Of a stretch of 64,000 nucleotides of DNA, positions 11,920-64,000 are shown piece after piece. Made by a program: the position numbers and the translations under genes. The first letter of the stretch is position 1; every line of letters starts with the position of its first letter. Origin of the DNA: Thalia democratica (lineage: Eukaryota). The notes under the pieces were generated by a model. That model was given only the letters and a program-made list of their open reading frames with translations. It was not told where the DNA came from and did not search any database. The stretch spans positions 21,576,001 through 21,640,000 of the forward strand of contig OZ241827.1 in NCBI GenBank assembly GCA_965202585.1. Direction: 5' to 3'.

Positions 11920-11960
11920 ATTCAGAGTAATTAATCTTGGCTGCTTGTCACTTACGACTA
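11920..11960. promoter_or_regulatory. Candidate conserved TAAT + TGTCA element
   Basis: gtaattaatcttggctgcttgtcacttac. Inverted homologues at about 41040, 26031 and 45656. Confidence 0.4.
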
Positions 11961-23490: not shown

Positions 23491-26400
23491 ATCTAGATGC
23501 AAAAAACAAACATGACTCAATTATTGTTTATTTAAATTTAAACTAAAACACTTATGTTTAAAGAAAAGCTGAAGACAAAAAATATTTATTGCTTATGTCA
23601 GGGAATAAAAAAGAAATTAGATGTATTAATCGTTTTTTTTTGTTAAAAAACTCGTAAACGATGTTTGTGACATAAAACAATTTTGTTCGGAGTTGCAAAA
23701 TATTATTCATATTATTGTATTAAAATATTTAAGTGATTTTAGATATTATTTTTTTTTAAATACTGAATATTAACAACATACAAATTTAATGACTATAAGT
23801 ATTATTGTATTAAAGTATAGTTCTACTTACTCGTTGCTCTCAATTACTACTTTATACCGAAAAGTTCTTTAATGAAGCTGTTGTTTTTTCTTCTTAAAAA
23901 ATTACAAGATTTAGCTTATTTCATTTAGAATATTATTAAAATAAAGAACCTACAAAAATAACCTTCGATTTAATGTCAATGATATTTTTTAAAATTTATA
24001 AAAAAATTCTGAAATAAAAACTTAATATGTTATAGGCTTGAAACAGTAGCTGTCGAATTTAAAACATTATTAATCTTGTTGACAAAATATATGCGCAAAT
24101 TGATTGAAAAATTGGAAAAACCAGATGTAAATAAAAAAGTCTAACATGATTATTACTGAATATTATTAAGTCGCGCGTTTAAATTTATTTTGACTGTGTT
24201 TTTATTGATTTAAACAGTATAATTTATCAAACCATAGAATAAGCTTTAACTTTTATACGTTATAGTTCAACCAAACTTAAAAATAACTTTCATATAGCTT
24301 GTTTATAAAACAATAAACAAGTATACATACTTTAAAAAAAAAAAGTTATTCAATTTTTATATGATAAATTAATTCAGTAGTTCAATTTCAATCAAAAAAG
24401 ATAAATTCAAAATTTTCAACTTTAATACTAAGTTAAATTTAATTTTTTTAAAGTTTTATTATATAACAGGCTCCTTAAGTACTAAAAATGACACTCAAAA
24501 TCAAAACTCAATCGTGATTTTGTCCGTGAAAATAATCTGTCATTTTAGTAAATCAAGAAAAGCAAATTTGTTTCCTTTAACAAGCAAGTAGCTAGATTAC
24601 AAACAAATGAAACTAGACACTTAGAAAACTACGGTGATTGATCAAAACTTAGTCAACCAAAAAAAATACAAACACAATTGAAAATTTTTTATGTAAAAGT
24701 TAGTCCATTAAAACTGTTGTTTAAAAAAATTAGCTCAACAATTTCGGTGGGCATTAAGTGTCATTTATAGATAGTAAACACAATCAACCATTTTTAGCCT
24801 TTATTCGATGCAAATTGAAACTCGATTTTTTTTGCATTGTCCTATTTTTTTTATTTTATCATCACTAATAGTTTTATACTTTGCTATGTCAATACGGATG
24901 TGTTTTTTATTTCAAATTTAGTACATACTCTTAATTACAAATACGATTGAAAAAAAACTATATTGTTATGCTAAAAAAAACAAATTTTAATTTTACTTTA
25001 ATATATTTTAAATTAAATAAGTTTATATATAGCTTACAAGTTTTATAAATGAATATATTGTTGATATATGTATTTTTGATGCATGCGTTTTTTTTTTTTA
25101 CTTTTTAGCATAGAAAAAAAGTTTACGAAATAAAAGAAGCAATTATTTTTTTTAGAAATAAATAAATTTTGAACAGTACGGATCAAACAAAACTATAAAA
25201 GTTAGAGTTGAAAACATCAAAGTTTTATTAGCTTAACAATTTTTAAACATTTATCTACGCAGCTAACTAAGTACCAAAACTTTTCTTAATTTTTTTATAC
25301 ATGTAAACAATATTTTATTTAAATTCTAAAAAGTAAAAAACTTACTTATAGTTTATGAAAAACTTCTACTTAACTAATAACTAAAAATAATAAAATTTTG
25401 AACAAGAAAGTAATAAAAACTATGCATTTAAAATTTATTGTCATCTAATATTGAATTATTTTTTGGAATACTGACATTTATTTTAAGTACTTTTAAACCT
25501 CTCATAGATGAAATCGTATAACTAAATGAATGTTACAGCAAAATTACTGTTAATTTTTGATAATTTATGACTATAAATAAATTTAAAAAATTAAAATCTA
25601 CAAGTTTGTACTAAAAAAAATATTAAAGTAGTTTGTTCGATTGTTCAAGTTTTTTTTAAACTTTAATGCATTTAACCGTCAGAAAAGATACTAAATATTC
25701 ATTAAAAAAATGTTTAATGTTATGTTTAAAACAATTATTCTTTAATACTTTGTCTATAGTCTAAAAAATAAGCAATCATTAAATTTAAAAATATCGGATT
25801 TAAGAAAGTTATAAGCTTTATCAAACTTTTTAGTTTATCATTTTTTCTAAAGAACATAAAAATAGTAGCAATTACTTTCAATATTTGTTGATGTGAAATA
25901 TTAACAAATAAAAATATAAAAGTTAAATAATCACAAGTGTAACAATTCAACGAAACACCAAATTAAAACTAAATAGTTTTTTTAATCCAAACATGCTATA
26001 AAAATGCAATAACTTAAGTTGTTAAGAGTGGTAATGACAGCTTACTAAGATTAATTGCTTTTAATCAACAAAGTCTGTTTGAAGTCATATGTTCTTTTTT
26101 GAAAGGCTTGTTTTTCTAAACTGTAGTTAGTTTTACATTTCCTTTTCATTACTTAAACTTTCGGGTTTATTCATTCAGAAAAAAGTAAAAATTTGAAACA
26201 CTTTTACTTAAATGCTGTCAACTCCTTCTATTCACGACAAACGATTGAAGCAAGTAACTTAAGTTTAGTAAACTTTTTATTGATCTATTTGATTCAAATG
26301 GGTGCAAACTCTAAAAAATTAATGCTTATAAAACTTTCAATTGAAAGTTTAAACGGTTTTCCGTGAATTTAGTATAAAGTCGTTTATTTGAATACAAGTT

Positions 26401-26584
26401 TGTCTCAATAATTTTTAAGCATGAATTGGTAACGGTTTTTATCAGAAGTTAAATCACTGAACTTAGTTGATACTAAATTCTTACTAACTGTTTATATAGC
26501 CTACTTAAAGTTTAAATATTTTTTTTTAGTAACTTTGTTTAAATTATACTCATTTTCTTTTCCCATGACCAATTTTATTTTATT

Positions 26585-26725
26585 AGTCTATAAATATTGA
26601 AATATGTAAAACTATTTATTAAAAATATATAAATATATAAAAGTCTATAAATATTGAAATATGTAAAACTATTTATTAAAAATATATAAATATATAAAAG
26701 TCTATAAATATTGAAATATGTAAAA
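26585..26725. repeat. 57-bp tandem repeat, about 2.5 copies
   Basis: agtctataaatattgaaatatgtaaaa... starts at 26585, 26642 and 26699. Not repeated in the paralogous block. Confidence 0.85.
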
Positions 26726-28749
26726 TAATTTATATAAAATATATTATTTTTATAAATTTTAAGACAAACTTTACAAATAAGCTTGCATTGCTATTCAATA
26801 ACTATTCAAAGTATGAATTTAATTGACCTTATTTATCTTTTTACATCTTTTTCTGTTTTTACTTTTACAAGGTTTCGCACAATCAGTTTTGTGTTTAACT
26901 AAAAACAAATACCATTGTGGTTTGCAAATGATACATTTGCGCATCATTTGCGCTAGTTCTACACAATTGCTAGATATAAACATTCTTTGATTTTATGAAA
27001 GTAGTTTTAAAATGTAGTTTTTATGCAAAAATTTTAAGCAAACTGTAATAAAAACAATCGATTGTCAGAATTTTTTTATATTAATTTGTTAATACAGTAA
27101 TCATATTTTATTGCCATCTAAAGTAGTTCGATAACAAAAAAGCTTACTTTTGATTTTGTTTCGCTATCTATTCGTAAAAATAGTTTAGAACATTAGCAAT
27201 AGTATCAGTCAATTTTTACAGAAAAATAAATCAATAATCGTTTGTTAAAAACTTGTATGTAATATTTTTTATCTACAAAGTTGTTTGGATTGCATAAAAA
27301 TATCTTTATGTATTTTTGTAAAACTTGTGAAGCTATTTCATTTTAATAGTTTTAAATAATACTGCTTTTTAAATACTTTTGTACTATTTAGCAAGCTATG
27401 TATATAACACTTTTTCTATTTAGCACAGTGTATAACTATAAAGTATAACTACAACAAACACTAGTTTTTTTTTGCAAACAGTATTTAGTGAAACTATAGC
27501 TATATGACAATTACGATTTAGAAAGTTTTTCCACTATCTATCCAAAAACTTCAAAACAAAAGTTCGTGAAAGTTTGTTTAAGATTAATTAAACAAACTTT
27601 TTTTTATTCTTCTTATAACTTAAACTAGACGTAACGATGTCTCATAGGAAATTATTAAATGTCTGCTTAAGAATAAGGAAAATGTTTTGTCTAAAAAAAT
27701 TTACACAAAAAAATAACTTAATGACAATGTAAAACGTCTAGTTCGTAACTTTTTTAATTACTTATTTATGTGGCAAACCAGTTCATTTGATTTTTCCGAT
27801 TACTTGGAAGCAATTAGCAGAAGTATTACTTATAAAACTTGGAAATTTTGAAAAACAAAAAGAAAAAAAAATAGATACTATGAAGTTCAGTTTGTATGAC
27901 TAAGTTGTTTTTTTAGCTCAAAAGAATTAGTTTGTTAGTTTTTGAGAAAGTTTCTGATCAAATTAATAAAATAATTTTTATCAAAATTCCGATTAAGTAT
28001 TTCATTCTTAATAAACATATATTCAGATATCTTTTTAAACAACACATAAAAGTTTAAATATTGTTTTTCTTTGTTTTTACGGTTAACAAGCTTTAATTGG
28101 CATAGTTTGTGAAAAAATATTGCAAAATTAAGATATACATGTTTGTCTTAAATCATCAACTTAAAAAACAATTCTAAAAATTTTAAAAACAGAAAAGTCA
28201 TTGGTTATGACTTTATTTAAAACAAAAATGGTGTTTAAAATGACGCTTTCATAAATTGTTCTTCCGCTTTTATGTGAGGTATGTTTTTAATAATTATACT
28301 TATAAAATACTCTTATAGCTTCAGTTATACTATGTAACGAATTACTAAAGTTTGTTTTTACATAATATACCACCTGTGTTGAATAAATATAAATTTTAGC
28401 AAATTAAGTTGTTCAGGTATATCAAATGAACAATTATAAATTGTCCTCAATTAAATTCAAAAAAACAAATCGTTAAGTTACATTAGCAATATAAAGCTTT
28501 AGCCAGTAATTTTTTTTTTTTGAATAAATTTTATGTAAGTATAATTTTGACAATCGACGTAAATTAAAGCTTGTTTATCGTAACCATAAAATTTTACTTC
28601 AAACGTATTTTTATTATTATTTAAAAAGTTTCCAATTATCTATTGATTTGATAAAGAATGAATAAAATAATAAAACGAAATGATTTACTTTCTTAAATAT
28701 AATGACTCCTCTTTTATCTGAAGTTTATTGTTTTTAACTTAAATGTGGA

Positions 28750-31925: not shown

Positions 31926-32401
31926 CTATACTGTATAAAGCAAAATAAATACTATTTTAATCAAGTATTGTCTGAATGTTGTACTAAATTACACTAAATA
32001 TGTATTTAATATTTTATTATCCCTTGACTGATGTAACGAATATTCAATGATCAAATTAACTGTGTCGCAATTTTTATTTTGTTAAAGAAAACAATTAATC
32101 TGTTTTTTTTTTACTTTTTAAGTTGTATTATTATGCCGAAAAAATTTCAATATAATAACAATTTACTATAAGATATTAAAATAGGAGAACCTTTGCTTTT
32201 TAATAAAATGAAAATAAAGTTTTAAAAAGGTTTATTTGTTTAGCTAGTTTTTGTTCTCCAATAACCTATTACATTAATATACTTTTAAAATATTTTGTAG
32301 TTTTTTTTTTGTTTTTTGTAAATTTACTTTTTAAAGATTTATATTTAACTACTTATCAATCAGATAAAACACATGACTGATATATCATAATGACGATTTT
32401 T

Positions 32402-35400
32402 TTAGAACAAGACACGGCTTCTATTTCGCATACTTGAAGTTAATTCAAGTCTCAGGTGTAGGTCGCTTTCAGGTCTTATGGTTCCCGACGGTTTTCCTGA
32501 GTGTCTGAAAATTATTCTTTGCTCCTGACGCCACTTCATTCGTCTGTTCTGAAACCAGATTCTCACCTGCGATATTAATTAGTTGTGAGCATTAAAAAAT
32601 TAAAAAATTAAAAAACATTCGACCAGTATATAAATCTAATCGTTTTTACAAAAACAAACTTTCTTTTGTTATTATTATACTGTTTATTGTGCAATATTGG
32701 ACTCAGACATCAAAAACTGAGCAACTCAAACAGGACACACAAGAAGAAAAATAAACTTATATTAATTTGTTTAATATAATAAGCAATGACTATAATAATA
32801 ATGAAGTAAATTGTTAGTCTGTTAAGGGGGAGGCGTAGGAAAATAAAAATATTTAATATTACGAATAGAAAAATGAAGGAATTAGTAGTTATTTTAGATG
32901 AGATAAATATCATAAAAAACTATTCGCTTATTTTTTTATATTACTTTTACTGGAAAGCTATTGAGTCTTACTGATATTTATACTGTTTAAATAAAATATT
33001 TTTAGTTTGAAGCTAAAATATTCCACCCTCTCACACGATACCACATCCTGTGGTAACTTGTTCCACATAGTCTTTGCTCTGAGCAAAAATTAACTTTGCC
33101 ACTGACTGTAGTTAAAACTATGTTTCAATATTATTTTTCTATCATTTATTCTTAACTGATATTATGTTTATTAAATATTATCTGATTTTTAGTTTTACTA
33201 GTTTCGCCGCAATGTTATAACTTTTTTTTTTGAAATAACCACATTTTCTTTTCAGAAAACAAAAAACGTTTCAAATAGAAAATAAGTTAACATATAGAAC
33301 AATAGTTTCTTAGTTTACAGAAAAACTGCGTATGATGTATTATTGTGACTTTATTTACTGTATCAAAACTTCTATATGTGTATGAACATACAACATTATT
33401 ACTAGTAATAATTAACTAAAAAGACTATTTTAATTATGTTACATTGTAGTAGAAATAAATTTAAACCTGTGCATCAGTAAGACCAAGATGCTCAGCAAGT
33501 CCTAATCTTTCCCTCTTGGCAACATACTTTTGAAACTGAAAGCTCTTTTCTAACTCTATCCGCTGTGTTACGCTGAAATATTTTTCTATTGAACTAAACA
33601 CTAATGTTTTACTATGAAATTAAGTAAAACTTTGAAACTATCAAAATCCACTTGTTTTTGATAGAAAATGCATAACATAAAAAGTTGTAACTTGTATTTT
33701 TTAAAAACAAATCAACAACAACCGTTGTAGCCATTATGTTGTTGCCAATAAAGAAAAATTAAGCTGTATTTGCAAACTTAACTGTATCAAATTGACTCAT
33801 TAATTTTCAAAAGCATATTAGTTTACTTCACACGGCATTGTAGTTTTCTTTTATTGGTTTTAACGATATTTACTTTATTTAAGAGCTTTTTATTTCATCT
33901 TTATATAAAATACAGTTTAAAATCGTTTCAAAAAGTTTTCAAATCAGTCGAAAACTTTTTATTGGTTTCCTATAACTTTAAGTTTTTTCTTCGATCTAAG
34001 TAGAAAACAATTAATCCCAATTAAATGCAAATAAATAGTGACAATTGTTGACATTAATTGAGTTAAATTGCCTGATATTGTTTTATTCCAAGTTTAATGA
34101 TGAAAATTTAGTGTATTTAAGTTTTTTAAACAATCCGTAAAACATTGATAGCTTTTAACCTCTTTTAAGTTTAAATTAATTTGAACCGATAAATGCTAAA
34201 ATTTCTTTTTTTTTAAGTAGTAAATAAAAAACTTTTGTTGTTAACTTTGATTCCTCAAAATTTATAAAAAGCTTGTTTTTTATTTACTGTATAACATTTA
34301 TTTAAACTTCGGAATTAGTAATACACTATACTTTACTTCAATAAACCGTTATAGGTGCAATAAAATATCAATAACTTAATAATATTTAGTATCCTTAAGT
34401 ATTTATACAATGCTTAAAATTGTTCAAAAGCCTTTCTAACTTATAACTATTTCACAAAACTGTTTTTCTAATCAAAATTTATAAATTATTATAAAATTAG
34501 TTAGACATTTTTATGTATTATTATTTAATCTTTTTTTAATAACAAGTTAACACAAAATTAAACAGAAAAAATAAGATAGGTATTTATAAAAGCTGATTTG
34601 TAAAACAGCATTGCGTAAGTTAAACAAACAGTTAAAAAATAAAATTCACTCATAACTACCAAGGACAAATTTTATAAAAAAATGTATATACATAATTATT
34701 TTCTTAAAACTTGTACAGCTGCAGCTTATATGAGTGTTTTACTCGGAACTACCAACTAAAACTATAAAACGTGCGTATGTCTTTTTTTGAAATAAAAGCA
34801 AGAAGCTGTAACACTTGTACTCAGAAGTTTGAGTAAAAGCTTCTTTCATGGCTTGATTTTATTTGTCATGTCTAACTAATATTACAGTATTATAAAGAGT
34901 AATATTTTCTTATTATACTTTGTTTCATTTTATTAAAGCATATGCTGCTATAGTAGTGAAACTGACTTTAAAATATAGAAAAAAAACCACAAACATCTGA
35001 TCTTATTACAAAAGTCAAGGGATTAACTAAAAAATACTTTAGAATAGTAAAGAACTAATAACAAACTAAATAGATCTTATAACAGTTTGGCTAAAAATAA
35101 GAAATATAGATGAAAACCTAAACTAATTACCCGAAATATATACGATATCACATGGATTTGGGTTACACCTACAAACTTTAACTTTAAAAAAAACTTATGA
35201 AAAGTTATATAAGTAGAAAAATACTCAATGCTTCATTTTCTTATGAACAATTGTATAATTATTTAAATGTTTTTTACTTTAAAACGGTTCTGCTCCATTT
35301 TCTGCGTTTCTTATTGGACGATCTTGGCAAATCTTGCGAAGTTGAGGACACCTCCGCACTGCTCAGCCCTGACAACCGGTTACCATGGTGATACGGGGGA

Positions 35401-37580
35401 GAGGAAACTTTACAGGTCATCCGGTGTAGGTTTGAATTTCGTCGAACGATCTGAGGTGAAGCGAAATTTTTAAGTTGAGGCTCTGTAGACATTTATATTA
35501 CTTTTTATACATCTGTGAAGTGAATATTTGCAAAAATTACAAATAGGTTATGACGGTTTAAATTATTATGACATGACCTTAATAAACTATTTGATTTAAG
35601 ATTATAGAATTAGTAAAATAATATTAGAATTTTTTATTGTTAAAAACATGTTTAGGAAATAAAGCTAAAATTCCAACAATTTTAATTATGGCTTCATTAA
35701 TTAATCTATATCTCAAAACAATTATGAATCGAGAAAATAATTAATCTTTTTTTTTTAAAGGCAAATAGTTAGCTTTTCACATTATTTAAAATTATTTAAT
35801 TGTTTTTTTTTTTGTCTAAACAAAATGCTTTTAAACCTTTAAATGTTTACATTTATTTTATAAAACTAGAAATGAGTAAGCTTAACAAGCTTTAAAACAG
35901 ATTTTAATTGTTAATTCTTAAAACATCCGGTGTCAATCACTTAAATGACTTATAGTTGACGAGTTTTTAAATTCTTATCTTTTTAAACTTTATTTGCCTT
36001 TTTTGAATGAATATATTTTATGAACTTTATATATACCGGAATTTTACAGTACTATCCGAATATAAAAACAAAAAAATTTTATATTTAAAAAAAATGAAAT
36101 ACCCGTTTTTTGACAAGTTTTCAATTTATTTACGCACTTTTTCAACTACTTGAGAAATTGGTTGAATAAAATGAACAAGTTCTTTGAATAAAAATTCAAA
36201 TTTAAACTGAATCAACACAAATCACGATATTTATAAGCTTAGTTTGGCCATTGAGTTTTAGAAAGTAAGATAACTTCATATTTTAAAAGCTATTCATTAA
36301 ATGTAGAAACTGTTCAAATAAAAAAAAATGTAAGTTATACAAAATATTTTAACTGAATCATCACAACTCACGATACTTCGAAGTAAAACTTTGCCAAGCT
36401 CGTAAATGGTTTTGAAGCTGACAGTTGCTTGATTGGTTTAAAATTGACCAATAGCGTTTCTGCAAATCACTTTGAGTCGGCAACGCTGGGTCTACAGTTT
36501 GTTAAGTAAAATTTAATGATTAAGATTTTTTTTTCAAAATATCATTTTGTTCTTTGTAAAACATAACCACGTTAATAGTATAAGTCAAAAGATAAAAAAA
36601 TAATTTAATAGTATAAACAAAAACAAAATTGTGAAATATTTTATGAAAAAAAAAATAAATAAAACTAAATTATTGTTTTAACTGTAACACAAGCTAAAAA
36701 TGTTAAAACTTTACTTACAATTTCCGAAAATTTTCTGCAAATTTCTACCGGCCAAACCTTTCAAATTCATGTCCATCAAGCTCTTACGGTGAGCTTCCAT
36801 GGAAGCGATCTGGTTGTAAAGTTTGTTCTGAAACGCGGCCGCCTCTTCTATGTGAGACCTCAGTTCGCTATTATTCGAGTGACTTTTGATGCTCGCATCA
36901 GACGACTGAGAATCCACAGACATCCTGAGCTTCGACGGGTTCCTGATCTCAGGATTAAAAGATATCGTTGGCATTCTTTCTACTTCTGTTTGAAAATACG
37001 AGTAGCTCTTATCCGTGTTTTGGAAAGTCGTCGCTTTTTCTACGGTTTTCTTTTCTTGGTTTCTTTCGCTACCGAGACGCTATCCTTTTGGTACACAGTC
37101 TCAGTCGGGAAAAAGTTGGTCTTCAACGCAAATGGCTTAATGCCCAAAATGGCTTCTATTCTGAAGCTGTTTTTGTTGCTGTTGGCTTTCGGTGCGACGT
37201 TTGTGTGAGTTTCTTTTGTGTCCAACAGGCCGGTTGGTAACATGTTTTGACCTACACAATTTGTTATGGTAGAAATTGTATAAGGTATTTTAACTAAAAT
37301 GTAATACAAATCCTTATTGTAACAGTTTTCCTGGACTTAGCAAGAAAGGTTTGAAACTTAAATGGTTATTTTAAAAGTGATTTAAATTTAGTGAAACATT
37401 AATTGTTAAAACATTTCTAAGACACAAAATAAAAACGAGCATTTAAAGTTATGGTGGTCAATTTACCTGGTTGGCGAACATTGCTGACTTGTACTTTTTG
37501 TTGAACTCAAGCATGTGCTTGTAAAAATTCGGGTCGATCATACTGCTTGTATTGTAATGATTAATCTTTGACTTGTTCAT
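32402..37580 (-). CDS. Hlx: Hlx-like homeobox copy B; two 1-bp deletions in exon 2 as assembled (young pseudogene or sequencing error)
   Basis: Exons 37580-37467, 37251-36719, 36491-36372, 35482-35278, 33572-33467, 32566-32402 mirror copy A. Exon 2 is 533 nt vs 538 nt in A: A5>A4 at about 37247, C3>C2 at about 37044, plus an in-frame 3-nt deletion. Confidence 0.8.
32990..33130 (-). mobile_element. CR1/L2-clade LINE ORF2 C-terminal relic in intron 5 of copy B
   Basis: Minus strand reads ...FLLRAKTMWNKLPQDVVSCERVEYFSFKL, resembling the WNxLPxxVV motif at the end of CR1/L2 ORF2. This intron is 900 nt in B vs 389 nt in A. Confidence 0.55.
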
Positions 37581-40500
37581 TGCATGAGTTTTAAATCTGC
37601 GTTTTGTTATTCGTTGTTTGATCAGTTAAAATAATATAAAAGAAAAACTAATTAGTTAACTAGAAAAGCTCAAGGCGTGTATAAAATTTTTAGAGTATAA
37701 CAGGACGATTAAAAAAATATATTAATTTAAAGCAAAGGGTAAAACTTATCTATAAAACCATCTAGTGCAAAATAAACTTATATGGATTTAAGCATAAGCT
37801 CTTTAAGCATAGCTGTTTATAATAAAAAGTGTTTATATGTTCTTAATAAAATACATGTTTTAGAAACATCGATGCATCTGTTAGTATCGTTTACCATTTT
37901 TAAACAAAACGTCGCTTGTAACAAAAAACATAAGGTAAACAAACTTAATGCAAAACGTTAAAATAAAGCAGATAAAAAAGGTCAAAAAAAAAATTTTTAG
38001 TGCAAATCAAAATTATGAAGGTTAAAGCATAAGCTCTAAAATCATCACTTCTTATAATTAAAAGTGTTTAAAGGTTTTAAAATAAAATTTTTGCTTTCAA
38101 CCATCAATATATATGTTTATACATTTTACCATTTACAAACAAAATATTTATTGTAACTAAAAGTATAAGTTAAACAAACTTCTAAGGTAAGAAAACAATA
38201 GATTATTAAATAGAAACAAGTCTTAGTGTTATATGAAAAACAAGCAAAAATTTAAACATTTAGAACTAATACTAAAAAACTGCGTTCACAACTTTGTGTT
38301 TTAATAAATTACTTCGGAAACACCGGTATTGACTGCGTTCACGAATATCTAGAAGCAAAAAACACAAACATGACTCAATTAATGTTTATCTGCAGTAATA
38401 TTGAGAATGCAAAACAAAAGTTAACTGTTTATCTGGTGATATCACTAACTCGTTTTTATAAGATTTCTTGTCAATAAGTAAAACAAAAACTTAAAGTTTA
38501 TGCAACACAAACTATCTTTTTAAAGATGGTCTTACGCGAGACTAACTACTAATTTGTTTTAATTAACTTTTATTTACAAATGTTTAAGATTTAACCAACT
38601 TTAGACAAAAGTGTTTTTTTTTTAATAAATTTTTAAATTGTTTTGAATTTATTTTTAATGGTTTTATATGTACTAAGTAAGCTTTTTTATGAGTTAAAAT
38701 TGATTATATCAAATAATTTTTAAAATTAACAAATCTATTGACTCTATAAGTAAACTCTCTTTGATTAAAAATTCGAGCTGTTATTTTTTCCGTTTAGAAA
38801 AAAAAACGACATTTTTTAACTAAACTTTTAAAATCTACAACTGATTTAAATAACATTGATACTTTTGTAAACAAAATAAAATCTGCTTTAGGTTTGAAAA
38901 AATTAAATATAAATTAAAGTGTTGCTCAATAACATATATAACCAATCATTATCATTCACTCGCTTTTATTCGATTTATTTTGACAGCATTTTACTGTTAA
39001 GCAGTTATAGATCAAAGTTTTTTTTTTTTTTGCTGTTCATATTGTTTCTCTTAAACAAATATTCAAAGAAAAAAAAAACATTTTTATCGTAAAACAAAAA
39101 CTAAATAAAAACTCTATAAAATTACTTTATTTAAAGTCGTTCAGAAAAAAAAACTCCAGCTTTAAATTGTTTTTGTTTTTTACCATACTGCTTATATTTA
39201 ATCAAATAAAAAACTTAAGAATAATCTCATTTTTAATTAACAGTCTTTTCTTGTTTCATAATCGCATTTTTTTTGCATCTTGTTATTTATTTAAAACATT
39301 TAATCAAATAAGTTCAGCTAATTGAGAAAGCAAATTTTATTCTGTTTGATTCATTACTTTAACTTAACTTCCATTTTCAAAAAAAACAAATAAAAGGGGA
39401 GAAAATAATTCAGTAAATGTTTATTCGAACTTGCATCAAGTTTTCGAGAAAATAATTTGTCACTTCTGAGTACAATAAAATCAAACATTTGTTTCCTGCA
39501 ACGGCCTTGTTGCTTAGCAACAAAACGTTGACACTTGCTACTTTTCAAGCTGCGATGATTAATTGAAATCTAATCTACCGCAATGTAAAAAATTAACAAC
39601 AAGCTTTAATACGATTTCAAACTTCTTTTGCAATGAAGACTAATTTTTAAGTACTAAAAAATCAGCTCTGTTTAGAGTGTTGAGCTTTTTTTTACTTCCG
39701 TCCTTTTATAGTTTAATACAATCGAACAACTTACAATTCAATCCCTTATGTACATTGTTCTAATTTCGATTTATCATCAGCGCGTTTGAATGGCTTCGCA
39801 GAATATGTCAGTTCAAACTGAATCACAAATTTGTTCTTAAGCATTTAAATCATCGTGTGTGTATACAACATTTGTTAAATCAAAACTTATTTTCAATACT
39901 AAGAAAAATGTTATTGATCTTTTTAACTATTAAAGATTTCTTTTTGTTTATTTTTAAAATCAATATGATTAAACTAAAAAATAAATACTAAAAGTTAGGA
40001 TCTATGTTGTTTTTTTATTTTTTAACGAAAATAGTTATTATTATGATAAAAATGTAAAAAAATCACCTAATTGTCTTCAGAATAGCATCGAATTACAAAC
40101 ATAATGATCAACTGCATCTTATAAGTATTTCTTGATTAAAATTTCCACAATAATTAAAAATATATATAGTTCAAATTACAAAAAGTTAAAAAAGCTCTTT
40201 TTGCTTATACTTTTAAACTAACAATCAAATTTACAAGTTTAGTTTTGTTTCAGTTTATAAAAGGGAAAGCTGCAAAAAATCTGTCGCAATTTAATATAAG
40301 CTCACAAAAAACATAAGACTGAAAAAACGATTTAAAGTTAAACATTATAAATATTTAAAGTATACTTTTTAATTAGTGTATTTCAATAACTGGATATTTA
40401 GGTTATCAAAACTATTTCAAAAAGCTATTCTTTTTTTTATGTTAAAGTCATTATAAACTTCTATTCAAAAAACTCTTTATCTTATTAAAGTTTCAAATTT

Positions 40501-43500
40501 TTTTAAACTTTATATAAAAGTCTAGTTTGACGTAATAAAAATTTTAGCTTTACTTAACTTTAAATTTAATAATTAGTATATCATATTTATGAAAAAAACT
40601 ACTAAACATTGAAGTATAAAATTAAAGGTACAAATTTCAGTCCGTTTAGTTTAGGGTATATTTTTTATTGTGTTTATTAAGTACATAAAGAGTATAAAAT
40701 TACAATTAACAATAAGTAAGTTTTAAGCGTATTATAGTGTATGTTTACATAATTAATTTAAAACTAAGTTTGTTATTATAAAGTAGTTTAAAATTTAGCT
40801 ACATAAAATAATTTACATTGAAAAATCTTAACGTAAAATTTTTATAATTTAGGCAGTTTGTAGATTACTAGGTTTTTGTGTATTGCTTTAAAACTCTAAA
40901 AACTTATCGTTTTATTAAACTAATTAAAAACGTAAAAGGACATAAATGCTAACTTATGCACAAACTGCTTTACTTAGTAATCAATACGAAAAACATCTAT
41001 TAGAAACCATAAATTGCAAAAATTGAATTAACTGTAGTCGTAAGTGACAAGCAACCAAGATTAATTACTCTGAATGAACAGAACTCAACATCAAGTTAAA
41101 CTTTGTTTAACAATTTTTCTAACTCTAGTTGCTTAAACGTTACCTTTTCATCTTAAAGTAGTTACCTGTTTATATTAAGCCATAGAATTAAATTATTGAT
41201 GTGAAAAATATTTGTTTTTTTTTCAGTTTTCAAAATTATAAGATTATAGATATACTCTGTTAAGTTTATTTAATAATCCTTAACTGGTTGCTTTACTAGT
41301 TGTTTAAAAGCTTATTTTATTTGGTAAAACTATTAAAAAACACTTTAACTATATTTATCTTAAGTAGGATGTTGGGTAATAACTGTTTAACGATATTGTA
41401 CTTCGTTCTGACTAGCAATAGCCACACATTTTTTGCAAACACTTTCAACTGTATTATGTTACAAGCCTATGGCAATTGGCATACTTCCTACAGATTTCGA
41501 CACAACTTATTTGAACTAGTTCATTTTTCTACCTATTCAAAAAAAAAAGCTGCTGTCACAACTATTGTTTTTACAAACAATAAAGCAAATATAGCACAAT
41601 CACACAATTTATACTCTGTTTTCAGCGGCAACACGTTTATTGGTGACATGTGATTTATGCAACAATGAAAAATTTGCATTTATTTTAGCTTTTAACAATA
41701 CTGTGCAGTTTGTAAGCTTTTGTTTAAAACTAGCATTTCTTACAACTTCTTTGAAAATCTAACAAAATTTAAGTAACTAAATCATGGAGTAGTTTTAGTA
41801 TATTTTTAAAATTTATGAAGTTTTAGGAACATCAAAATGTTTTGTTATAAAATGAGAAGTTTAAAAAAAAAATTTTAAGTACTTTTGTGTAAAGTTAATG
41901 CTTTTTAGTTTTAAAACACTAGTTGTTGGTAAAAAATACATTGTAGTTATAACTAAAAATATGTTTAATGTGCAAAATATTTAAAAATAAAAACTTAAAA
42001 TTAGCAATGAAAAGTATTAGGTTAAATACTGAGTCTTAGTTGCTGATTAAAATTATGCTTCTTTTTCAATGTAGTACACATAAATTGTTTTATTATTTTT
42101 GAAATCTTAAAGCAATGAAGTACCTTATACTAAAAGTACTTAAGCAAGCATTTGTATTGGTAAATAAAATAAATGAAAAGTCCATAAGTGTGCAAAAGTG
42201 ACTAAAAACTTAGCTTTTAGTCACTAATCCAGCTAATTAAAATAAAAGAAACAAATAGTGCTAACAAGTAAAAATAAACACTAAAATTTCAATAAAAAAT
42301 TATAACAACACCAAAATATTAATAAAAGTTTTATGAGTTTCGATACAAACATAATACTTTGAACAAGCCAACAATTTCGGAAACAACGGTTTTGAATGCT
42401 TTTACGAATATATAGAAGCAAAAAACAAACATGACTAAATAAATTTTTATTTAAATTTAAACAAAAAACTTATTTATACACTGTTAAAAAACTGTATATA
42501 TAAAACTTTGTTTGAATAAGCTAAAAACTGAATATATTTATTGCTCTTTTTAGTGAAGTATTTAAATAAACTTTTCAGATGTATTCACTGTTATATTTGT
42601 AAATAAATGTTTTACCCGTTATTTGTGTCACAAAACAATTTTGTTTAGCATCCCATAATATTATTTATTTCATTTTATTTAAGTATTTTAGTCATTTAAG
42701 ATACTAATTTTATAAAATAACTAAATATTAACAACATACAAATCTAATGACTATAAGTATTATTGTATTAAAGTATAGTTCTACTTACTCGTTGTTCTTA
42801 ATTACTTCTTTATACCAAAAAGTTCTTTAATGAAGCTTTTGTTATTTCTTCTGAAAAAAAATAAAAGTTTTAGCTTATTTCATTCAGAATAATATACTTG
42901 AAACTAAAATACCTACAAAAATAACCTTAAATTTAATGACAATTATGTTTCTTAAAATTTATTAAGTTTTGTGAACTAAAAAAAAAAATTTATAAGCTTG
43001 AAGCAGAGGCTGTCGATTTTAAAACATTATTAATCTTGTTTAGAAAATATATTCGCAAATTGATTGAAAAATTGGAAAAACCAGATGTAAATAAAAAAGT
43101 CTAACACAATTATTACTGAATATTATTCAGTCGCGCGCTTTAATTTATTTTAACTGTGTTTTTATTGATTTAAACAATATAGTTTATCAAACCATAGAGT
43201 AAGCTTTGATTTTTATACATTATTGTTCTACTAAACTTAAAAATAACTTTAGAATATTTATTTTACAATAAAAAAGTATATATACTTCTTAATAAAAACT
43301 TTAGTTAAATTTTTTTATGATAAACTAATCTAGTAGTTCTATTTCAATCAAAAAATTATTTCATAATTTTCAACTTTAGCACTAAATTAAATTTAACTTT
43401 TTAAAAAGTTTTATTATATAACATGCTCCTTAAGTACTAAAATTTGAATTCAAAATCAAAACTTAATCTTGATTTTTCCGTGAATATAATCTGTCATTTT

Positions 43501-44532
43501 AGTAAATCAAGAAAAGCAAATTTGTTTCCTTTAAGCAAGTAGCTAGATTACAAACAAATGAAACTAGATACTTAGTAAAATACGGTGATTAATCAAAACT
43601 TAGTCAACCAAAAAAGAAAATTAAAAACACAATTGAAAATGTATTATGTAAAAGACAGTTCATTAAAACTCTTGTTTAAAAAAAATTAACTCAATCATTT
43701 CGGTGGGCATTAAGTGTCAGTTTTTCTATTTCTGTTTCCGTCTATTCATAGATACTAAACACAATCAACCATTTAAGCTTTTAAACTGAAATTGAAACTC
43801 GATTATTTTTGCACTTTTTTAGTTTTTTTAATTATCATCACTGATCGATTCATACTTTGCTACGTTTTGTGTTTTTTTGTATCAAATATAGTACAGTATC
43901 TTGTTTGCAAATACAACTGGAAAAAAACTAAACTGTTACGTTAAAATAAACCAACCTTTTAATTTTAATTCAATAGAGTTTAGATTGAATAAGTTTATGT
44001 ATAGCTTACAAGTTTTAGAATGAAATTATTTTTTACTTTAAAGTATATAAAAAAAGTTTATAAATTAAAAAGTTAAAATGTTTTGCTTATAAAAAAAATT
44101 AAGCAGTCCTGATCAACGAAACTATAAAAACTTGAGTTAAAACATTAAATCTTTATTGGCTTAATAATTTTTGAATATGTTCTACGCAGCTAACTAAGTG
44201 TTAAAACTTTTCTTTATGCGTTTTTAAAGTAAACAATTTTTTTTAAATTCTAAAAAATAAAGGACTTAGTTGAATTTTATGAAAATCTTCTATACAACTA
44301 ATGACTTAAATAATCAAATTAAAAAAAAAAGTTATAAAAATGATATATTTAAAATTTATGATCATCTAATTATGAAGTATTTTTTGGAATAAGAACATTT
44401 ATTAAGTACTTTTAAAACTCTCATAGATGAAACCGTATAACTAAATGAATGTTACAGCAAAATTTCTGTTTATTATTGCTAGAGTTTATGACTATAAATA
44501 CATTTACAAAATAAAAATCTATAAGTTTGTAC

Positions 44533-45259
44533 CAGGGGCGTCGCGTGGGGTGTTGCACTGCCGCAATTGCACCACCTTAAAATTTTGTAAGAAAAAATTA
44601 AGTATCTATAACGTTTTCGTTATTTGTTAGAAGAAAATCGTTTATAAAACTCCAATTTAGAAAACGACCATTTTGCTAACTACACTGCCGCAAACTCTTA
44701 GCTGATTGCCGCAAATGAACTCAAAACAGCAAAATTTCTTCAAGAATTACCGCAAAATTAATATCTTGCGGTAAGTAAGCTAAGTTGAAAATTCCCTGAA
44801 ACAGTACAGGTTTAAGTATCATTCCACAAGTTATTATAAACAAAAAGTTAAAACAAAGCTAAGCAGATCACAGGCGATTCGAGCAGAAGCAACTCGAGAA
44901 GAAGCAACTCGAGAAGAAGCAACTCGAGAAGAGACAACTCGAGAAGAGGCAACTCGAGAAGAGGCAACTCGAGAAGAGGCAACTCGAGAAGAAGCAACTC
45001 GAGAAGAAGCAACTCGAGAAGAAGCAACTCGAGAAGGAGCAACTCGAGCAGAAGCAATTCGAGCAGAATCAACTCGAGCAGAGGCAACTCGAGCAGAAGC
45101 AACTCGAGCAGTAGCAACTCTAGCAGAGGCAACTCGAGCATAAGCAACTCTAGCAGAGGCAACTCGAGCAGGGACAACTTAAGTAGGGGCAAGTCGATCA
45201 CCTTAAACTCGGATTTTTTTTTCTGCACCACCTAAGAAAGATACCACGCGACGACACTG
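44533..45259. mobile_element. hAT-family MITE, 727 bp
   Basis: TIRs caggggcgtcgcgtgg / ccacgcgacgacactg. Perfect 8-bp TSD gtttgtac (44525-44532 and 45260-45267). Empty site with a single gtttgtac in the paralogue at 25604-25611. Confidence 0.92.
44874..45180. repeat. 15-bp minisatellite, about 20 units, inside the MITE
   Basis: Consensus gcaactcgag(a/c)aga(a/g), read directly. Confidence 0.92.
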
Positions 45260-47558
45260 GTTTGTACTAAAGAAAATATAAAGTACTTTATTCGATTAAT
45301 CAAGTTTTTGTTTTTGAAGCATAAATGTATTTAACCGTCAGATAAGATACTTAATGTTTAAATAGAATAAATTTAATGATATGTTGAAAGCAATTATTTT
45401 TTGATAAATGTCTAAAATTTTAAAAAATAAGCAGTAATTAAATTTAAAAGTAATGAATTTTAGGAAGTTATAAGCTTTATCAAATTTTGTAGTTTAAATT
45501 TTTTCTAAAGAACATAAAAGTAGCAATTACTTTTAATATTTATTGATTTGAAATATTAATAAATAAATAAAAATAAAATAATAAATTACAAGTCTAACCA
45601 TTTTTTTTTAATCCAAACATGCTATAAAAATGCAATAACTTAAGTTGTTGATAGTAATAATGACAGCTTACTAAGATTAATTGCTTTTAATCAACAAAGT
45701 CTATTTGAAGTCATATTTTTTGTTTTTAAAGGCTTGTATTGCTAAAAACTAGTTAGTTTAAAATTTCCTTTTCATTACTTAAGCTTTTGAGTTTGTTTAA
45801 GAAAAAAGTAAAAATTTGAAACACTTTTACTAAAGGCTGTCAAATCGTTCTATTGAAGCAAGTAACTTAAATTTGGTAAACTTTTTATAAATCTATTTGA
45901 TTTAAATGGCGCAAACTTTATAAACATTCATGTATATAGAATTTAAATTGAAAATTAAGTATTTTTCCGTGAATTTTAAAACAAGTAGTTTTATTTGAAT
46001 ACAATTTAGTCATTTCAATACTTTAACATTAATGTGTATGGTTTGGTATAACCTAACAACATTTTTATAATAAGTTAAACCACTTAGTTTATAGTAAATT
46101 CTCTATAAATTGTTAATATAGCCCACTAAAAGTTAGCAATTTTATATTTTCTGTGTGTTATACTTTGTTTCTACACTAAACTTATTGTGTATTTTTATAG
46201 CTTTGTTTATATTATGTTGATTTTACTTTCCCCTAATCCTTTTGATTTGATTACTCTGTAAAAACTGAATTCTGTAAAACATTTAATTAGAAACATATTA
46301 TTTTTTTATGATACGTTAGGGTTAGACAACCCATACAAATAAGCTTACATTGTAATTTCTATTTAAATAATGTATTGAAGTGACTTTTATTGTGTTTTTA
46401 CGTCTTTTTCTATTTGTATATCTACAAGGTTTGCACAATCAGTTTTGTGTTTAGCTAAAAATAAAGGTCATTGTGTTTTGCAATCAATAAAGTTGCTCTA
46501 CATTTTTGCTAGTTGTACACAATTGCTAAAATAAAATGTTTGTTTATTGTTCTTAGTACAGCTTTAAAAACAGAATGTATTTGTTAAGCAGTAATTTTGA
46601 GGAAACTTAAGGTCAACAAATGTTAATTGAGACTAGTTCATACAGTACTGTTACGCGTTTTTCTTATTTTATTGTTGTCCAAAGTAGTCAGATAACATGT
46701 TATTTTTTTGTAGTTTTATTAGCATTATCTATTCATAACATTATCTATTCTATTCTATTATCTATTCTATTTAGAACATTAAGTAATAGAATCAGACTAT
46801 TCTTACTAAAAAATCTACAAAATACGGTTGTTGAAACTTGTTTAAATACTTTTTTAGCTTCAAAATTGTTTAAATTGTACACAACCATTTTAAAGTATTT
46901 TGTAAAACTTTTGAAACCTTTTTACTTTAATAATTTCAAATGCTAATGCTTTTTATAATAATTTTGTATTTTTCATAAGACGAGTATATAACATTCATTT
47001 TAACTATGAAATATTACTAATTAAAACACTTTTTTTTTTGTAAACAGTATTTAGTAAAACTATAGCCAAAAATCAATAAGGCCTTAGAAAGATTTTTTTA
47101 AAACCTTAAAGTCCAAAAAAACAACTCATTATGTAAAAATTATATAAATTAAGTTATAAAGTTTAAATTCTAAATTAACTAGACGTAACGACGTATTTTA
47201 GGAAACTATTAAATGTCTGCTTCAGAAAAAAAAGAGACTTTTTTGAAGTAAAAGTACGCAAGAAAATAATTTATCACAATGTAAAACGATTAACTCGTAA
47301 CTTTTTTTAAGTGTTTTTATAAGGCAAGCCAAATTATTTAATTCTTCCGATTACTTGTAAGCAATAAGCTAAAGTATTACTTATAAAAATTAGAAAACTG
47401 TAAAAAAGTTACGCTAAGATATATTAAATTTTTTTTTTAAGTAAAAAAATAGGTATGATATTAATCTACTAAATATAAAGTTCTTACCAAAATAAAAACT
47501 TATTATGTCTTTTTTATGTTTCTGCGATAGTTTACTAAAATAAAAATAAAATTTTGAG

Positions 47559-59400: not shown

Positions 59401-61444
59401 GCAGGAAATTTCATATAAAATAAATAAAGTACTAAATGTTAGATAAATAAATAACTGTTTTATTTGTTTTAAAAACATTTCAATTAGGTATGTTAAAATT
59501 ATTTTGTTTCTAAATAAAAACGTTAAGAAAGAAGCATGTTAATGGAAAAACTTAATCATAATTACATTTTACATTGAAAAAGCAATATATAACAAAATTT
59601 ATTTTTATTTTTATAGAAATTAAATTTAAGTGTTGAGGTTTGTATACATTTATTTAATGTCAAAGTATGTTTAAAACATAATACATTACATGTCTTTTTC
59701 TTAAAAGTAAATCCTGATAAGTAAAAAGTGTTATAAATTCTTATATGAATTTTTTTATTTTTTAATGAAAAATAAGGCTGTATGTTTTATGGCAAGAGAT
59801 CATCTGTTTTTTAAATTACTAATCTGAAATATTAATTGTCATCTTTAACTTTTTTGATGAATCAAACAACAAAAAATACATTTGTTTTTATATAAACTTG
59901 TTGAATAAACTATCTGGCATAAGAATAAACTTACTTATCGTGATAAATAAGTTAACTATAAGAATTAAGCCATAGTATTTGTATCTGTAACTTGTCTTTA
60001 GCTAGTCACATCTTTTTTGTACATGTATCATTATAACTAAACGAATAAGAAGTTCGTGCATAAACTATATATTTAATTGTTAATGGTAGAAAACGATGAA
60101 AATTTCTAAATAGTTTCCTGTATTCCTTCAAAATTTACGAAACTCACAATAATCCGTACGGGTCAATCCGTAGGCTCAAGTCTATATTTTCCTTTCCATT
60201 GTAACCGTCTTCTAAACCTTGTAATTGTAACAATATGAGACGGACCTAGGTAGTTAAAAAAATTACACAGTTATGTTGATCGTAAAAAACCACAAGTAAA
60301 ATAATAATTTTTATGGGTATGCCCAGGGTCAAAAACTTATTATTTACTACTTAATATTATTATTTTTTAACTAATGTACTTGCTGCCAGTAGTCACTTTT
60401 TGGGTTTTGATCGATCATACTGTACATGTAGTCCAAGTTTTCTCTGAAAAACCTCTTGAGACGAGGGCAGTTTTTCGAAACTTTGGGACAGTGACCTGTG
60501 TTTTAGTTCCTTGTAAGTAATAATTTTTTATTCTTATACATAATTAAACAAGAATAACTTTTTAATTAACAATTTTTCAGCTTGTATGGCTGTTCCGGAA
60601 AACTACTTTTGTTTTGTTTAAAACGAAAAAATTGACAAGCTTTTAAAAAAACTCTTTAGGCTTTGTTTCATACACAAACTTTTAAATTTAGGTGTTTTTC
60701 AAAACATGTTTGTAAGTTTTTGAGTATCGTTAGAAATTAAAAGTTATCTGTTACATTTATTAAAGTATAGAAACCTGATTTTGAGTTTTCAATTTTTTGT
60801 TTTATCAGGTTTTTTGTTAGTATTCCTTCCGCGAAACCAGCGACATAGGCTTGCATTGAATTGTTGAATTTTGAATTTGTTTTAATGTCAATAAAGGAAA
60901 ACCTTTGTAAAGTATAATAGAAATTACTAAAGTATTAACATTTTTCATACTTACTTATAATGTCTTCAAAAATCTTTTTTTAATTAAAGTAATATTTGTT
61001 TTTACTCAAATTCGTAAAATTTTAAGTCCTTTAAACTTTTAATTTTTTATTTGACTTCTATATTATTTATTTAAGAAAACCAATTTTTGTAGTATTTGTA
61101 TGTGTTTTATAATTGTTATGAAGAAAACTGAGTTTAAATGCCAAAACTATAGTATATAAAATCATTTTCTGCATATTAAAAAATCTTCAAAAAAAAAAGT
61201 AATTTTTATTTAAAAAACTTAACAGGTTAATTAACAAAGCTAACCCATTTTCTTTTATACTGTTTTTAAATGCAGCTCTTAAAATATCAGTTTTGCCAAA
61301 ATTATCTGTCAGTTTTGTTGTTTTGAATTGAGTTATTTTGTTTTGATGCACATCATGTTTGAACAAATATGTAGTCCATTTTGCATTACTATAAACTATG
61401 GTAAAAATTGAAAAAAAAAGTACTAAACAAGTTAGTATATTCAT
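53428..61444 (-). CDS. PLBD2: Phospholipase B-like 2 (lysosomal Ntn-hydrolase precursor), 545 aa, 12 exons
   Basis: Exons 61444-61245, 60902-60775, 60495-60380, 60245-60148, 57121-56892, 56724-56633, 56504-56341, 56086-55988, 55775-55704, 55394-55254, 54540-54394, 53578-53428 total 1638 nt with consistent phases. Signal peptide, then family motifs YWQQVRLILLQLQGLEDGY, CSALVKLLP..DLLVGHATW, ETTIGN, NSGTYNNQWMVIDY, PRAKIF, NDY..DPL, AIASRYDLN, GPTHDQVPPFKWS. Confidence 0.93.
57900..58380. repeat. Degenerate tandem repeat, about 3 units of about 175 bp, in PLBD2 intron 4
   Basis: Recurring cattctata.tttaggt, catgaaaaagta.aaaa and gagtatacat.aatg motifs. Confidence 0.6.
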
Positions 61445-61817
61445 TCTGTTAATAAAACATTACAGTTTTTAGTTTATGCTTTTCTAAACGTTTTAAAACA
61501 ACATATGCAAGTTTAATCTTTTGTTTATTTATCGCTACTTTTATATTTTTATTTGATTGTAACAAATTAAACTTATGAAAATATAAACTGAAAAACTTTA
61601 AACGCGTTTTTTAAAAAAGAAACAAATAAAAATGTATTAAATTAGCATGTAGATAAGTTTTATTAAGTATAAAAAAAAGTTTAAAAAAGTTGAAGAAAAG
61701 AATAGGTTGACTCTCTTGAGGTAGCCACAATACAATATTTCAACAGCAACATTTGAGCATCATACGCGTATACTTAATGCTACACTATTAAGAAAGGCAC
61801 TTGAATATGAAAAAAGC

Positions 61818-62303
61818 AAGCTGACGACCTAGTCAGCTTAGGGATTTTACAGTGTAAAGCTGTAATGAAAAAATCCCTAGACGTCCTAGCGGGTAGACGT
61901 CGTCAAGGCGGGCTGTGTGTTTTTGCTGGCATACAGGTTATAGCTGGAGTCGACGTGGCCGTCGATTCGAGCTGGAGTCGCTAGACCGCAGTTAGGCGGT
62001 TATAGGTTGTATAGCAGACCTCATTGAATAAGTAGCTAGGGAAGGTAAAGCGAGAGCAAGGCAGGTACCGTCCTAAGCAAGCCGTTGAGCATGAAAGCCG
62101 CTCTCTCGCAAGGCGTAGCAGTATATGAACGAGCTGTGACATGATTCAGCCCAGTTGAAAGTACGTTTGAGTGCAAAAAGTAAAGCATTTCTAGAGGTGA
62201 AGGTTCGGACGGGGCGACTGAAGCAGAGTAGGCGAGATACCAGAAATTGCGAAGCACTCAAAATGTAACTTGTAAAAAAGCGGCATAATCTCATGGTCGC
62301 TTT
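61818..62303 (+). ncRNA. Candidate large structured RNA of unknown class
   Basis: At least nine stems tile the interval, several with G-U pairs that work only on the plus strand. Transcription is not demonstrated. Confidence 0.35.
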
Positions 62304-62442
62304 CAAAGTCAGAGGTCAGTTGAAGCGAAATGTTTTGGAAGGGAAGCAGGAGGCTCGAGAAAATATTTGTAAAAGAGCGGGAGGTCTGTTTTTTGGAAAA
62401 ATTGTTGAAAATGAATTTTTGGGTTTTGAGAAGGGTCGAGGG

Positions 62443-62558
62443 AATATAGGAAGAAAAGTTGGAAAAAAATTTGAGCAAAAAAGCCGTCCGAATTCGCCCG
62501 CGGGCGAATTCGGACGGCTTTTTTGCTCAAATTTTTTTCCAACTTTTCTTCCTATATT
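62443..62558. repeat. Perfect 116-bp palindrome with no spacer
   Basis: 62443-62500 is the exact reverse complement of 62501-62558, checked base by base; centre ...aattcgcccg|cgggcgaatt... Confidence 0.97.
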
Positions 62559-63178
62559 TTTTTCAAAGGTGTTCGACGAAAGTCGGACGCCTTTTTTTTT
62601 ACCCAAAAATTTTTTAGGCTACCTCAAGAGAGTCAGAGTTTTTGCCTAGTAATGATTTTTTTTCAGTTCCACTGATGTCATAAGTTTTGAACGTTGCTGC
62701 CGAAAGGTTAGCATCGTTTTTATTTTACAAGTTCTTAATAAAGGTTGTTAAGGTTTTTGAAATTACAAATTGTCAATAGCCATATTAGAAAAATTTATAT
62801 TACTTTCGATACTTATAATAAATAAATAAAAAACTTAAGAACATGTATATATATTACTTATGCTGATAAGATAACAAATCCAATTGTACAATCAAAAACA
62901 AATTAAATTCGTATCTGTGCCTACGAACAACTATGTCAAAAAGAAAATTAAAAGTGTTGTTTTATAACTAAAAAAAACTTTTTAAAGCTGACACTTAATA
63001 AAGCAAACAGTTTCATTCAACATTGATACTTTTTAATAGTACTTGTATGAAGTTTTCTATACAATAAATAAAATTTTAAGTAGCAGGTATTTTGATTAAT
63101 TTAGTTAAAAGTTTATAATTCATTTAAATTTTTCTTAAAAATAAAATATCAGAGTTTAGTTTGTTAAATAAAACGACA

Positions 63179-63783
63179 AAATCGATAAAACCTTTTGTGT
63201 AGTTTTGAAACAAATAGTTTAAGTAAACTTTCAAAATCAATTTATCTGATTAAATAATGTGATTTAGTTCATTTAACATAACGCATAATTAAAGTGTAGA
63301 TAGCATTTAATTATATATGTAACTAAACATAAATCGATAAAATCTTTTGTGTAGTTAAGAAACAAATAACTTATGTAAACTTTCAAAGTCGATTTATCTG
63401 ATTAAATAATGTGATTTAGTTCATTTAACATAACGCATATTTAAAGTGTAGATAGCATTTAATGATATATGTAACTAAACATAATCGATAAAACCTTTTG
63501 TGTAGTTAAGAAACAAATAACTTATGTAAACTTTCAAAGTCGATTTATCTGATTAAATAATGTGATTTAGTTCATTTAACATAACGCATATTTAAAAAAT
63601 AGATAGCATTTAATGATATATGTAACTAAACATAAATCGATAAAACCTTTTGTGTAGTTAAGAAACAAATAACTTATGTAAACTTTCAAAATCAATTTAT
63701 CTGATTAAATAATGTGATTTAGTTCATTTAACATAACGCATATTTAAAAAATAGATAGCATTTAATGGTATATGTAACTAAAC
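63179..63783. repeat. Tandem repeat, about 152 bp x 4
   Basis: atcgataaaa starts at 63181, 63333, 63484 and 63636; units are nearly identical. Confidence 0.92.
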
Positions 63784-64000
63784 AGATTTTGTTTGAAACA
63801 ACTGTCATAGTCAAGATCTGAATTAATGATTAATAAAGACACCTCATATTTTCTAGAATATGCGCAAAAACTTAGTAGAAACATTAAATAATTAATTAAA
63901 ATAATTACAAAACATTGATTACTCCCACAACTGATTTCTGAATACAATTTAGCTTCGTTTTCTTTTTGCATGTTTTATTTGTTTAATTTTCAAATTTTAA

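Follow-up and report, generated by a model that had tools for sequence, protein, structure and literature searches.

In the window (the whole 64-kb stretch of DNA that was analyzed), an element of 928 bp was delimited at 61708-62635, measured between the outer edges of two 19-nt inverted repeats. These repeats are perfect, and a third occurrence of the 19-mer is absent from the window. The initial annotation had placed a hairpin-rich stretch at 61818-62303 inside an inverted-repeat element, and the perfect 19-nt inverted ends confirmed this placement. The following features were recognized from left to right:

61640-61707, plus strand: polypurine (A/G-rich) tract adjoining the left end of the element, with only slightly raised read depth
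61708-61726, plus strand: left inverted repeat, copying 28S/LSU rRNA in sense orientation
61727-61817, plus strand: AT-rich leader without excess structure (z +0.5 to +0.8), the most abundant left-hand part of the family
61818-62303, no strand assigned: GC-rich hairpin core of 486 nt, with nine local or domain-closing stems, no Rfam match and no ORF above 77 aa
62304-62442, plus strand: purine-rich spacer (66% A+G), unstructured, defined by composition and folding
62443-62558, no strand assigned: spacer-less perfect palindrome of 116 bp, with 58-nt arms that are 100% complementary
62565-62603, plus strand: terminator-like, bacterial-looking hairpin unit with a 10-13 bp stem and a GAAA loop, followed by T9
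62617-62635, minus strand: right inverted repeat, copying the same 28S stretch in antisense orientation
62636-62688, plus strand: family sequence past the right repeat, with the conserved spacer gagtttttgcctagta, a decayed hairpin unit (TCAGT/ACTGA) and T4

No convincing gene was found. The ORF listing contained no frame above 118 aa and none of gene size, a word search with the 77-aa frame of the element returned nothing, and exact-protein look-ups of two element ORFs gave no record. A tRNA/tmRNA scan was also empty. As for the criteria of a MITE or TIR element, inverted repeats, non-coding content and multiple copies were all found, and a target-site duplication at the repeat boundaries was not (AGGT on the left, GAGT on the right). 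A solo or terminal LTR was rejected: TG/CA ends and a purine tract are present, but the element lacks a duplication and the 61 kb upstream contain no further copy.

The palindrome at 62443-62558 is centered on GAATTCGCCCGCGGGCGAATTC, and its arms are 89% identical to 62580-62597 of the next hairpin unit. This likeness points to an inverted duplication of such a unit as the probable origin of the palindrome. In Rfam, it matched generic long-hairpin miRNA models, far below their gathering scores. A vector or bacterial origin was rejected despite the presence of GAATTCGCCC...GGGCGAATTC at the palindrome center, since BLAST against phage and plasmid sequences gave no similarity.

The surroundings of the element are repetitive at several scales. 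Tandem 152-bp units (about 4-5 copies, 93-95% alike) occupy 63024-63930, starting 390 bp right of the element, and at 44799-45242, about 30 tandem units follow one another every 15 nt. Moreover, we observed a large inverted segmental duplication (11108-19507 versus 32399-41881), whose arms are 79-98% alike, and a direct one with a spacing of about 19 kb (23491-26992 versus 42410-46548). They constitute a duplicated gene cluster that adjoins the element; the element itself is single in the window.

Folding of the hairpin core and searches for known RNAs

The nine stems previously read by eye in the core were all recovered (9/9), each at its position and each folding as drawn when taken alone. 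The minimum free energy of 61818-62303 was -160.5 kcal/mol, compared to -142.8 ± 5.5 kcal/mol for dinucleotide shuffles (z -3.2), and none of 100 shuffles folded as well. An independent repeat of this test on the plus strand gave a z of -2.9. Perfect inverted repeats were then counted with Watson-Crick arms only and a spacer of up to 100 nt: 14 of at least 6 bp were present, compared to 6.9 ± 2.6 in shuffles (4 of 500 shuffles reached 14), and 3 of at least 8 bp, compared to 0.43 (3 of 500 reached 3). The comparison with dinucleotide shuffles, which the initial annotation had named as a check, was thus passed by the core, and its hairpin density is real, at about twice the chance level. This excess was confined to the core, since the flanking element parts (61727-61817 and 62304-62442) gave z values of -0.3 to +0.8. 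The core is also distinct in composition, with 48% G+C compared to 22% in both flanks and about 25% in the whole window, and its CpG is not depleted.

It had been argued that G-U pairs existing on the plus strand only reflect selection on a single-stranded molecule. Such pairs are indeed found on the plus strand, but in statistical terms they count for nothing. Folded against its own shuffles with G-U allowed, the minus strand of the core gave z values of -2.9 to -3.35, and when G-U pairs were forbidden, the signal was kept or even raised (z -3.9 for the plus strand and -3.4 for the minus strand). The lower absolute energy of the plus strand results from its G/T-rich composition. Since the excess is equal on both strands and at least as strong without G-U pairs, the signal of the core is one of Watson-Crick, DNA-level complementarity. 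This is what any double-stranded, palindrome-rich DNA shows, and it speaks neither for nor against an RNA. A structure excess limited to one strand and aided by G-U pairs, the mark of a structured RNA, was not observed in the core.

Searches with covariance models gave a consistent picture. At gathering score, no Rfam family was found in the whole 64-kb window. With E values up to 10, cmscan searches of 2.2 kb and 0.74 kb on both strands left the core without a match, hammerhead, HDV-type and twister models included, and over 61700-62440 only two chance-level Rfam matches (14 and 13 bits) were obtained, with rRNA and snRNA models giving none. RNase P/MRP, group I/II introns and small ribozymes, which had been listed for an Rfam check, were all without a match in the core, and the loose likeness to P4/CR-V of RNase P that had been pointed out received no covariance-model support even at E values up to 10. 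An RNA polymerase III unit was rejected because of the T4 (61845-61848) and T5 (61920-61924) runs within the core.

The repeat family in public reads

Contigs of four public runs (X1, X2, X5 and X20) were aligned to 61300-63000 at an identity of at least 80%. In X1, the summed depth rose from about 300-700 in the left flank to about 7,000-23,000 within 61699-62667, with a peak of 57,600 at bin 62554-62610, and a similar profile was seen in X2 and X5. The 463 contigs of X1 covered a broad range of identities, with 91 at 99% or more, 90 at 95-99%, 147 at 90-95% and 135 under 90%. The earlier claim that the locus holds a mobile element was borne out by these data, which show it to be one member of a dispersed family with multiple copies and therefore mobile, at present or in the past.

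At the left end, contigs of three runs diverged from the window at 61707/61708 into different purine-rich flanks ending in T; where they crossed 61707, the letters of the tract were unlike those of the window yet A/G-rich, with GT or AT at the end. The purine tract may be part of the element, or it may be a preferred target. Past the right repeat, many contigs shared the same 16 letters and then another hairpin unit, with 62643 + T[T/G]CCTAGTA read before that unit, at a place where the window has a decayed unit (62656-62688 aligns weakly to the hairpin unit). The 19-mers may be subterminal, given that family sequence extends past the right repeat and that the left one is invariably preceded by a purine tract. 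With this arrangement, the element is perhaps something other than a simple cut-and-paste MITE.

Bin 62554-62610, which contains the GAAA-loop hairpin and T9, was the deepest in all four runs and represents the most abundant piece of the family. Joints going back 55 (from 62612 to 62558) indicated that the hairpin-plus-T-run unit is tandem in other copies. The leader bin 61756-61812 was about twice as deep as the core. Within the core, we observed deletion joints at 61859 to 62037, 61912 to 61995, 61912 to 62137 and 62058 to 62210, and further ones at 62231 to 62296, 62231 to 62342 and 62253 to 62389, most of these joints being found in single contigs with short sides. The core deletions, together with a left end about twice as deep as the core, argue against an indivisible 490-nt ribozyme that is needed for spread. 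The family is thus old and diverse, with deletion variants, and its conserved sequence extends past the right repeat.

Longer contigs carrying the flanks of this very copy at 85-95% identity were also present (record 8 of X2 on the left; on the right, record 6 of X1 and record 31 of X5), showing that the insertion is older than the local duplication or is present in a close relative. In X20, a marine metatranscriptome, contigs lay over 61813-62363. Since the depth of X20 mirrors the DNA copy-number profile, these contigs may stem from DNA carry-over, and they neither show nor exclude transcription of the core.

The window copy was further compared with the family majority at the best-supported differing sites. 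Eleven of these sites lie inside the element, 8 of the 11 within or beside the core. Changes at 61852 and 61913 strengthen a pair in this copy, those at 61946 and 61966 weaken the 13-bp stem, 62109 is polymorphic at a stem end, and 61981, 61982 and 61992 are unpaired. G-U pairs in the majority were plus-only at 61913 and 61946 and minus-only at 61852/61860, with no clear strand bias. The differences look like neutral drift, eight sites being far too few for an analysis of covariation.

The inverted ends and the conserved 28S rRNA site

Scanning metagenome contigs with the 19-mer returned 48 loci, half of which (24/48) are eukaryotic LSU rRNA genes in which the 19-mer is preceded by ...gggagtaacta and followed by aaatgcctcgtc; the Rfam model LSU_rRNA_eukarya matched L001, L002 and L004. 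None of the 48 loci shares anything else with the element. The left repeat is identical to LSU genes over 20 nt, through 61727, and the right repeat resembles 28S over 62614-62640, with 25 of 27 nt (92.6%) identical to many LSU loci. We take the 19-mer to be 28S positions -14 to +5 around the R2 insertion site (nick), and the 28S stretch at the element ends is a hot spot for rDNA-specific mobile elements. Most animals have TTAAGG at this 28S site. The element ends read TTGAGG, and the LSU loci retrieved show that this variant occurs in real LSU genes. The placement of the 19-mer agrees with the 28S letters upstream of R2 at 5' junctions (PMC3774820), and the target oligonucleotide of I-PpoI and I-Vdi141I, CTGACTCTCTTAAGGTAGCCAA, holds the 19-mer save for a central A/G (PMC2602781). 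Sequence identity marks the element ends as copies of a conserved 28S segment in which both the R2 site and the I-PpoI homing site lie. The sharpness of the 28S boundary at -14 was considered as a clue to cleavage by an R2 ribozyme; this clue was weakened by the right patch, which is 28S-like over 27 nt (-19 to +8).

Other copies of the element were not found in scans of viral contigs, and a scan of genome contigs gave one chance match only, in a fecal MAG. Two further arrangements of the 28S stretch were noticed among the metagenome contigs. An unrelated repeat family from another organism, with 40-47% G+C, was seen in L003, L011, L015, L016, L023, L029, L030, L033, L037, L038, L039 and L042. 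Most of these contigs (e.g., L023:1149-1232) have two direct copies of the 28S patch that are 62-69 nt apart; each copy starts at the same T (-14), the first one runs to about +15, and no long ORF is near. The AT-rich contig L025 (1-260 and 745-863) carries a 5S rRNA gene and, about 500 nt from it, at least four tandem 52-nt units, each with the 28S stretch from -14 to +14.

Origin and spread of the element

We conclude firmly that the element is dispersed, non-coding and multi-copy, with 28S-derived inverted repeats, and less firmly that it moves or moved as DNA. We assign a probability of about 0.5 to the full reading, in which the 486 nt represent the GC-rich core in one member of a dispersed, non-coding, 28S-ended repeat family that spread as DNA in an AT-rich marine animal. 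According to this reading, the family would consist of non-autonomous inverted-repeat elements whose spread as DNA, present or past, would depend on a trans-acting enzyme that recognizes the two 28S-like repeats. The hairpin core would be passenger sequence, acting at most in cis as DNA or ssDNA hairpins, and it would be neither a ribozyme nor a structured RNA gene; an ssDNA or DNA-level signal in the core is possible. The core might have been captured from a spacer of the host ribosomal DNA, which would account for its G+C content and its hairpins. We counted against the DNA-element reading that there is no target-site duplication, that no autonomous partner is known and that X20 contigs lie on the core.

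The alternative that survives best, although we consider it unlikely, is that the body is a copy of the host rDNA intergenic or external transcribed spacer with 28S tags, spread as an "orphon" or inside another element. The body would then comprise a promoter, a hairpin-rich spacer RNA and hairpin-plus-T-run terminators, and the stems would be processing or termination hairpins. Ends that are copies of 28S, a core of 48% G+C with undepleted CpG in a 22% G+C setting, and terminator-like hairpin-plus-T-run units in arrays are all consistent with this notion, as is ATATAGG at 62444-62450, at the left edge of the palindrome, a motif that presumably recalls, if weakly, RNA polymerase I start sites of insects and plants. 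Moreover, Pokey/mPok of Daphnia sets a precedent for a mobile element with rDNA spacer sequence (PMC10946416), and composition together with this precedent makes an rDNA-spacer origin of the element body plausible. However, the retrieved rDNA contigs, which are not known to be those of the host, share only the 19-27 nt patch with the element, the Rfam LSU and SSU models make no contact with its body, and the inverted orientation of the patches is left unexplained.

More doubtful is a rolling-circle, non-autonomous element of the Helentron type (HINE/DINE-1-like), in which the 19-mers would represent subterminal inverted repeats and the hairpin-plus-T-run unit a 3' stem-loop, with the many hairpins as ssDNA signals or captured cargo. 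In HINE elements, the subterminal inverted repeats lie at a distance of 2-4 nt from the 5' end and of 38-60 nt from the 3' end, and there is a 3' palindrome of 5-10 bp, a TT target and a set of central repeats (PMC4067079). The lack of a target-site duplication in our element would fit this scheme, as would the T directly before the left repeat, found in the window and in each of the three flank consensuses, the roughly 50 nt of family sequence with a small palindrome and a T run past the right repeat (to about 62688), and internal tandem units that vary in number. The repeats are, however, 19 bp and not 12-15 bp long, the left flank is A/G-rich and not T-rich, no Rep/helicase partner was seen, and Helentron biology predicts no rRNA-derived repeats.

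We regard as quite speculative the notion that the element ends are refreshed or recognized as copies of host 28S, with the core serving as a single-stranded scaffold, which would make the family a new kind of mobile element. Two routes could lead there: an R2-type or homing-type nuclease might cut both inverted sites and move the cassette, or a 28S fragment might prime replication and thereby provide each new copy with exact 28S ends.

Dependence on R2, as in the short internally deleted R2 elements (SIDEs), is improbable in our view. The core would in that case be an RNA bound by the R2 protein, with a 5' ribozyme and a 3' UTR-like fold, and the role of the 28S patches would be to anneal or prime at the target. 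The patch does span the R2 site. R2 RNAs of many species start within upstream 28S sequence, R2 5' junctions often have duplicated 28S pieces beginning TGACTCTC (PMC3774820), and SIDEs are structured RNAs of about 500 nt (PMC3414825). Nevertheless, both patches of the element are uninterrupted target sites and not split junctions, and they are inverted and not direct; the locus is not rDNA, and its flanks are AT-rich. Neither an HDV-like nor a hammerhead nor any other ribozyme model matched (at the 5' end, no Rfam HDV-type match was obtained with models that catch R2 ribozymes poorly), the structure is not strand-specific, and core-deleted copies occur in the reads.

Least credible of all is the main idea of the initial annotation, that the element carries a gene for a ribozyme or for another structured non-coding RNA with a function. 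In its favor are a fold z of about -3, with closing stems of 7 and 9 bp that act over a long range, terminator-like hairpins that bracket the plus strand and metatranscriptome contigs on 61813-62363. Against it are an equal structure excess on the minus strand and without G-U pairs, the lack of any Rfam match at E values up to 10 on either strand, T4/T5 runs in the core that would stop RNA polymerase III, internal deletions among the family contigs, and an RNA-run depth that mirrors DNA copy number, perhaps as DNA carry-over. With the failure of the candidate-ribozyme reading, bench effort on a self-cleavage assay of this copy is spared.

We found no account of non-coding repeats with inverted ends that exactly copy the 28S site of R2, Pokey and I-PpoI-type endonucleases. 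If these ends are what a nuclease or polymerase recognizes, the family would connect mobile elements specific to rDNA with spread across the genome, and it would provide a natural example of a cassette between "safe-harbor" sites. The family may also matter for local rearrangement, given the duplicated gene cluster that adjoins the element.

Among known systems, HINE/DINE-1 elements (PMC4067079) are similarly non-coding and high-copy, with T runs, variable internal tandem units and no target-site duplication. The layout of their short inverted repeats, one 5'-terminal and the other set back from the 3' end, together with a 3' stem-loop, may be shared as well. Unlike in these elements, the repeats are 19 bp long and are copies of 28S rRNA, and the left flank is purine-rich, whereas that of HINE is T-rich. 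Pokey and its MITEs mPok, piggyBac elements of Daphnia, spread at the DNA level and are associated with the 28S hot spot in question; they also occur at places other than rDNA, and rDNA spacer sequence has been recorded in their interior (PMC4912750, PMC10946416). Pokey targets the TTAA within the site and produces a duplication of it, whereas the element described here carries the site whole as its inverted ends. Membership in Pokey/piggyBac was rejected, TTAA being absent at both element boundaries and the patch reading TTGA.

The element shares with R2 and its SIDEs (PMC3414825, PMC3774820) the same 28S site, a non-coding, structure-rich part of about 0.5 kb and 28S fragments duplicated at the ends. 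In contrast, R2 and SIDEs interrupt the site, occur within rDNA in a single orientation and have an HDV-like ribozyme at their start; none of these traits was seen in the element. Finally, within CTGACTCTCTTAAGGTAGCCAA, the homing site of I-PpoI and I-Vdi141I at LSU position ~1925 (PMC2602781), the 18-bp specificity window of I-PpoI is nearly the same as the 19-mer. Unlike in I-PpoI homing, the element has neither an intron nor an endonuclease gene and its central base is G and not A; moreover, two intact inverted sites flank its cassette, whereas in homing one site is split by the intron.
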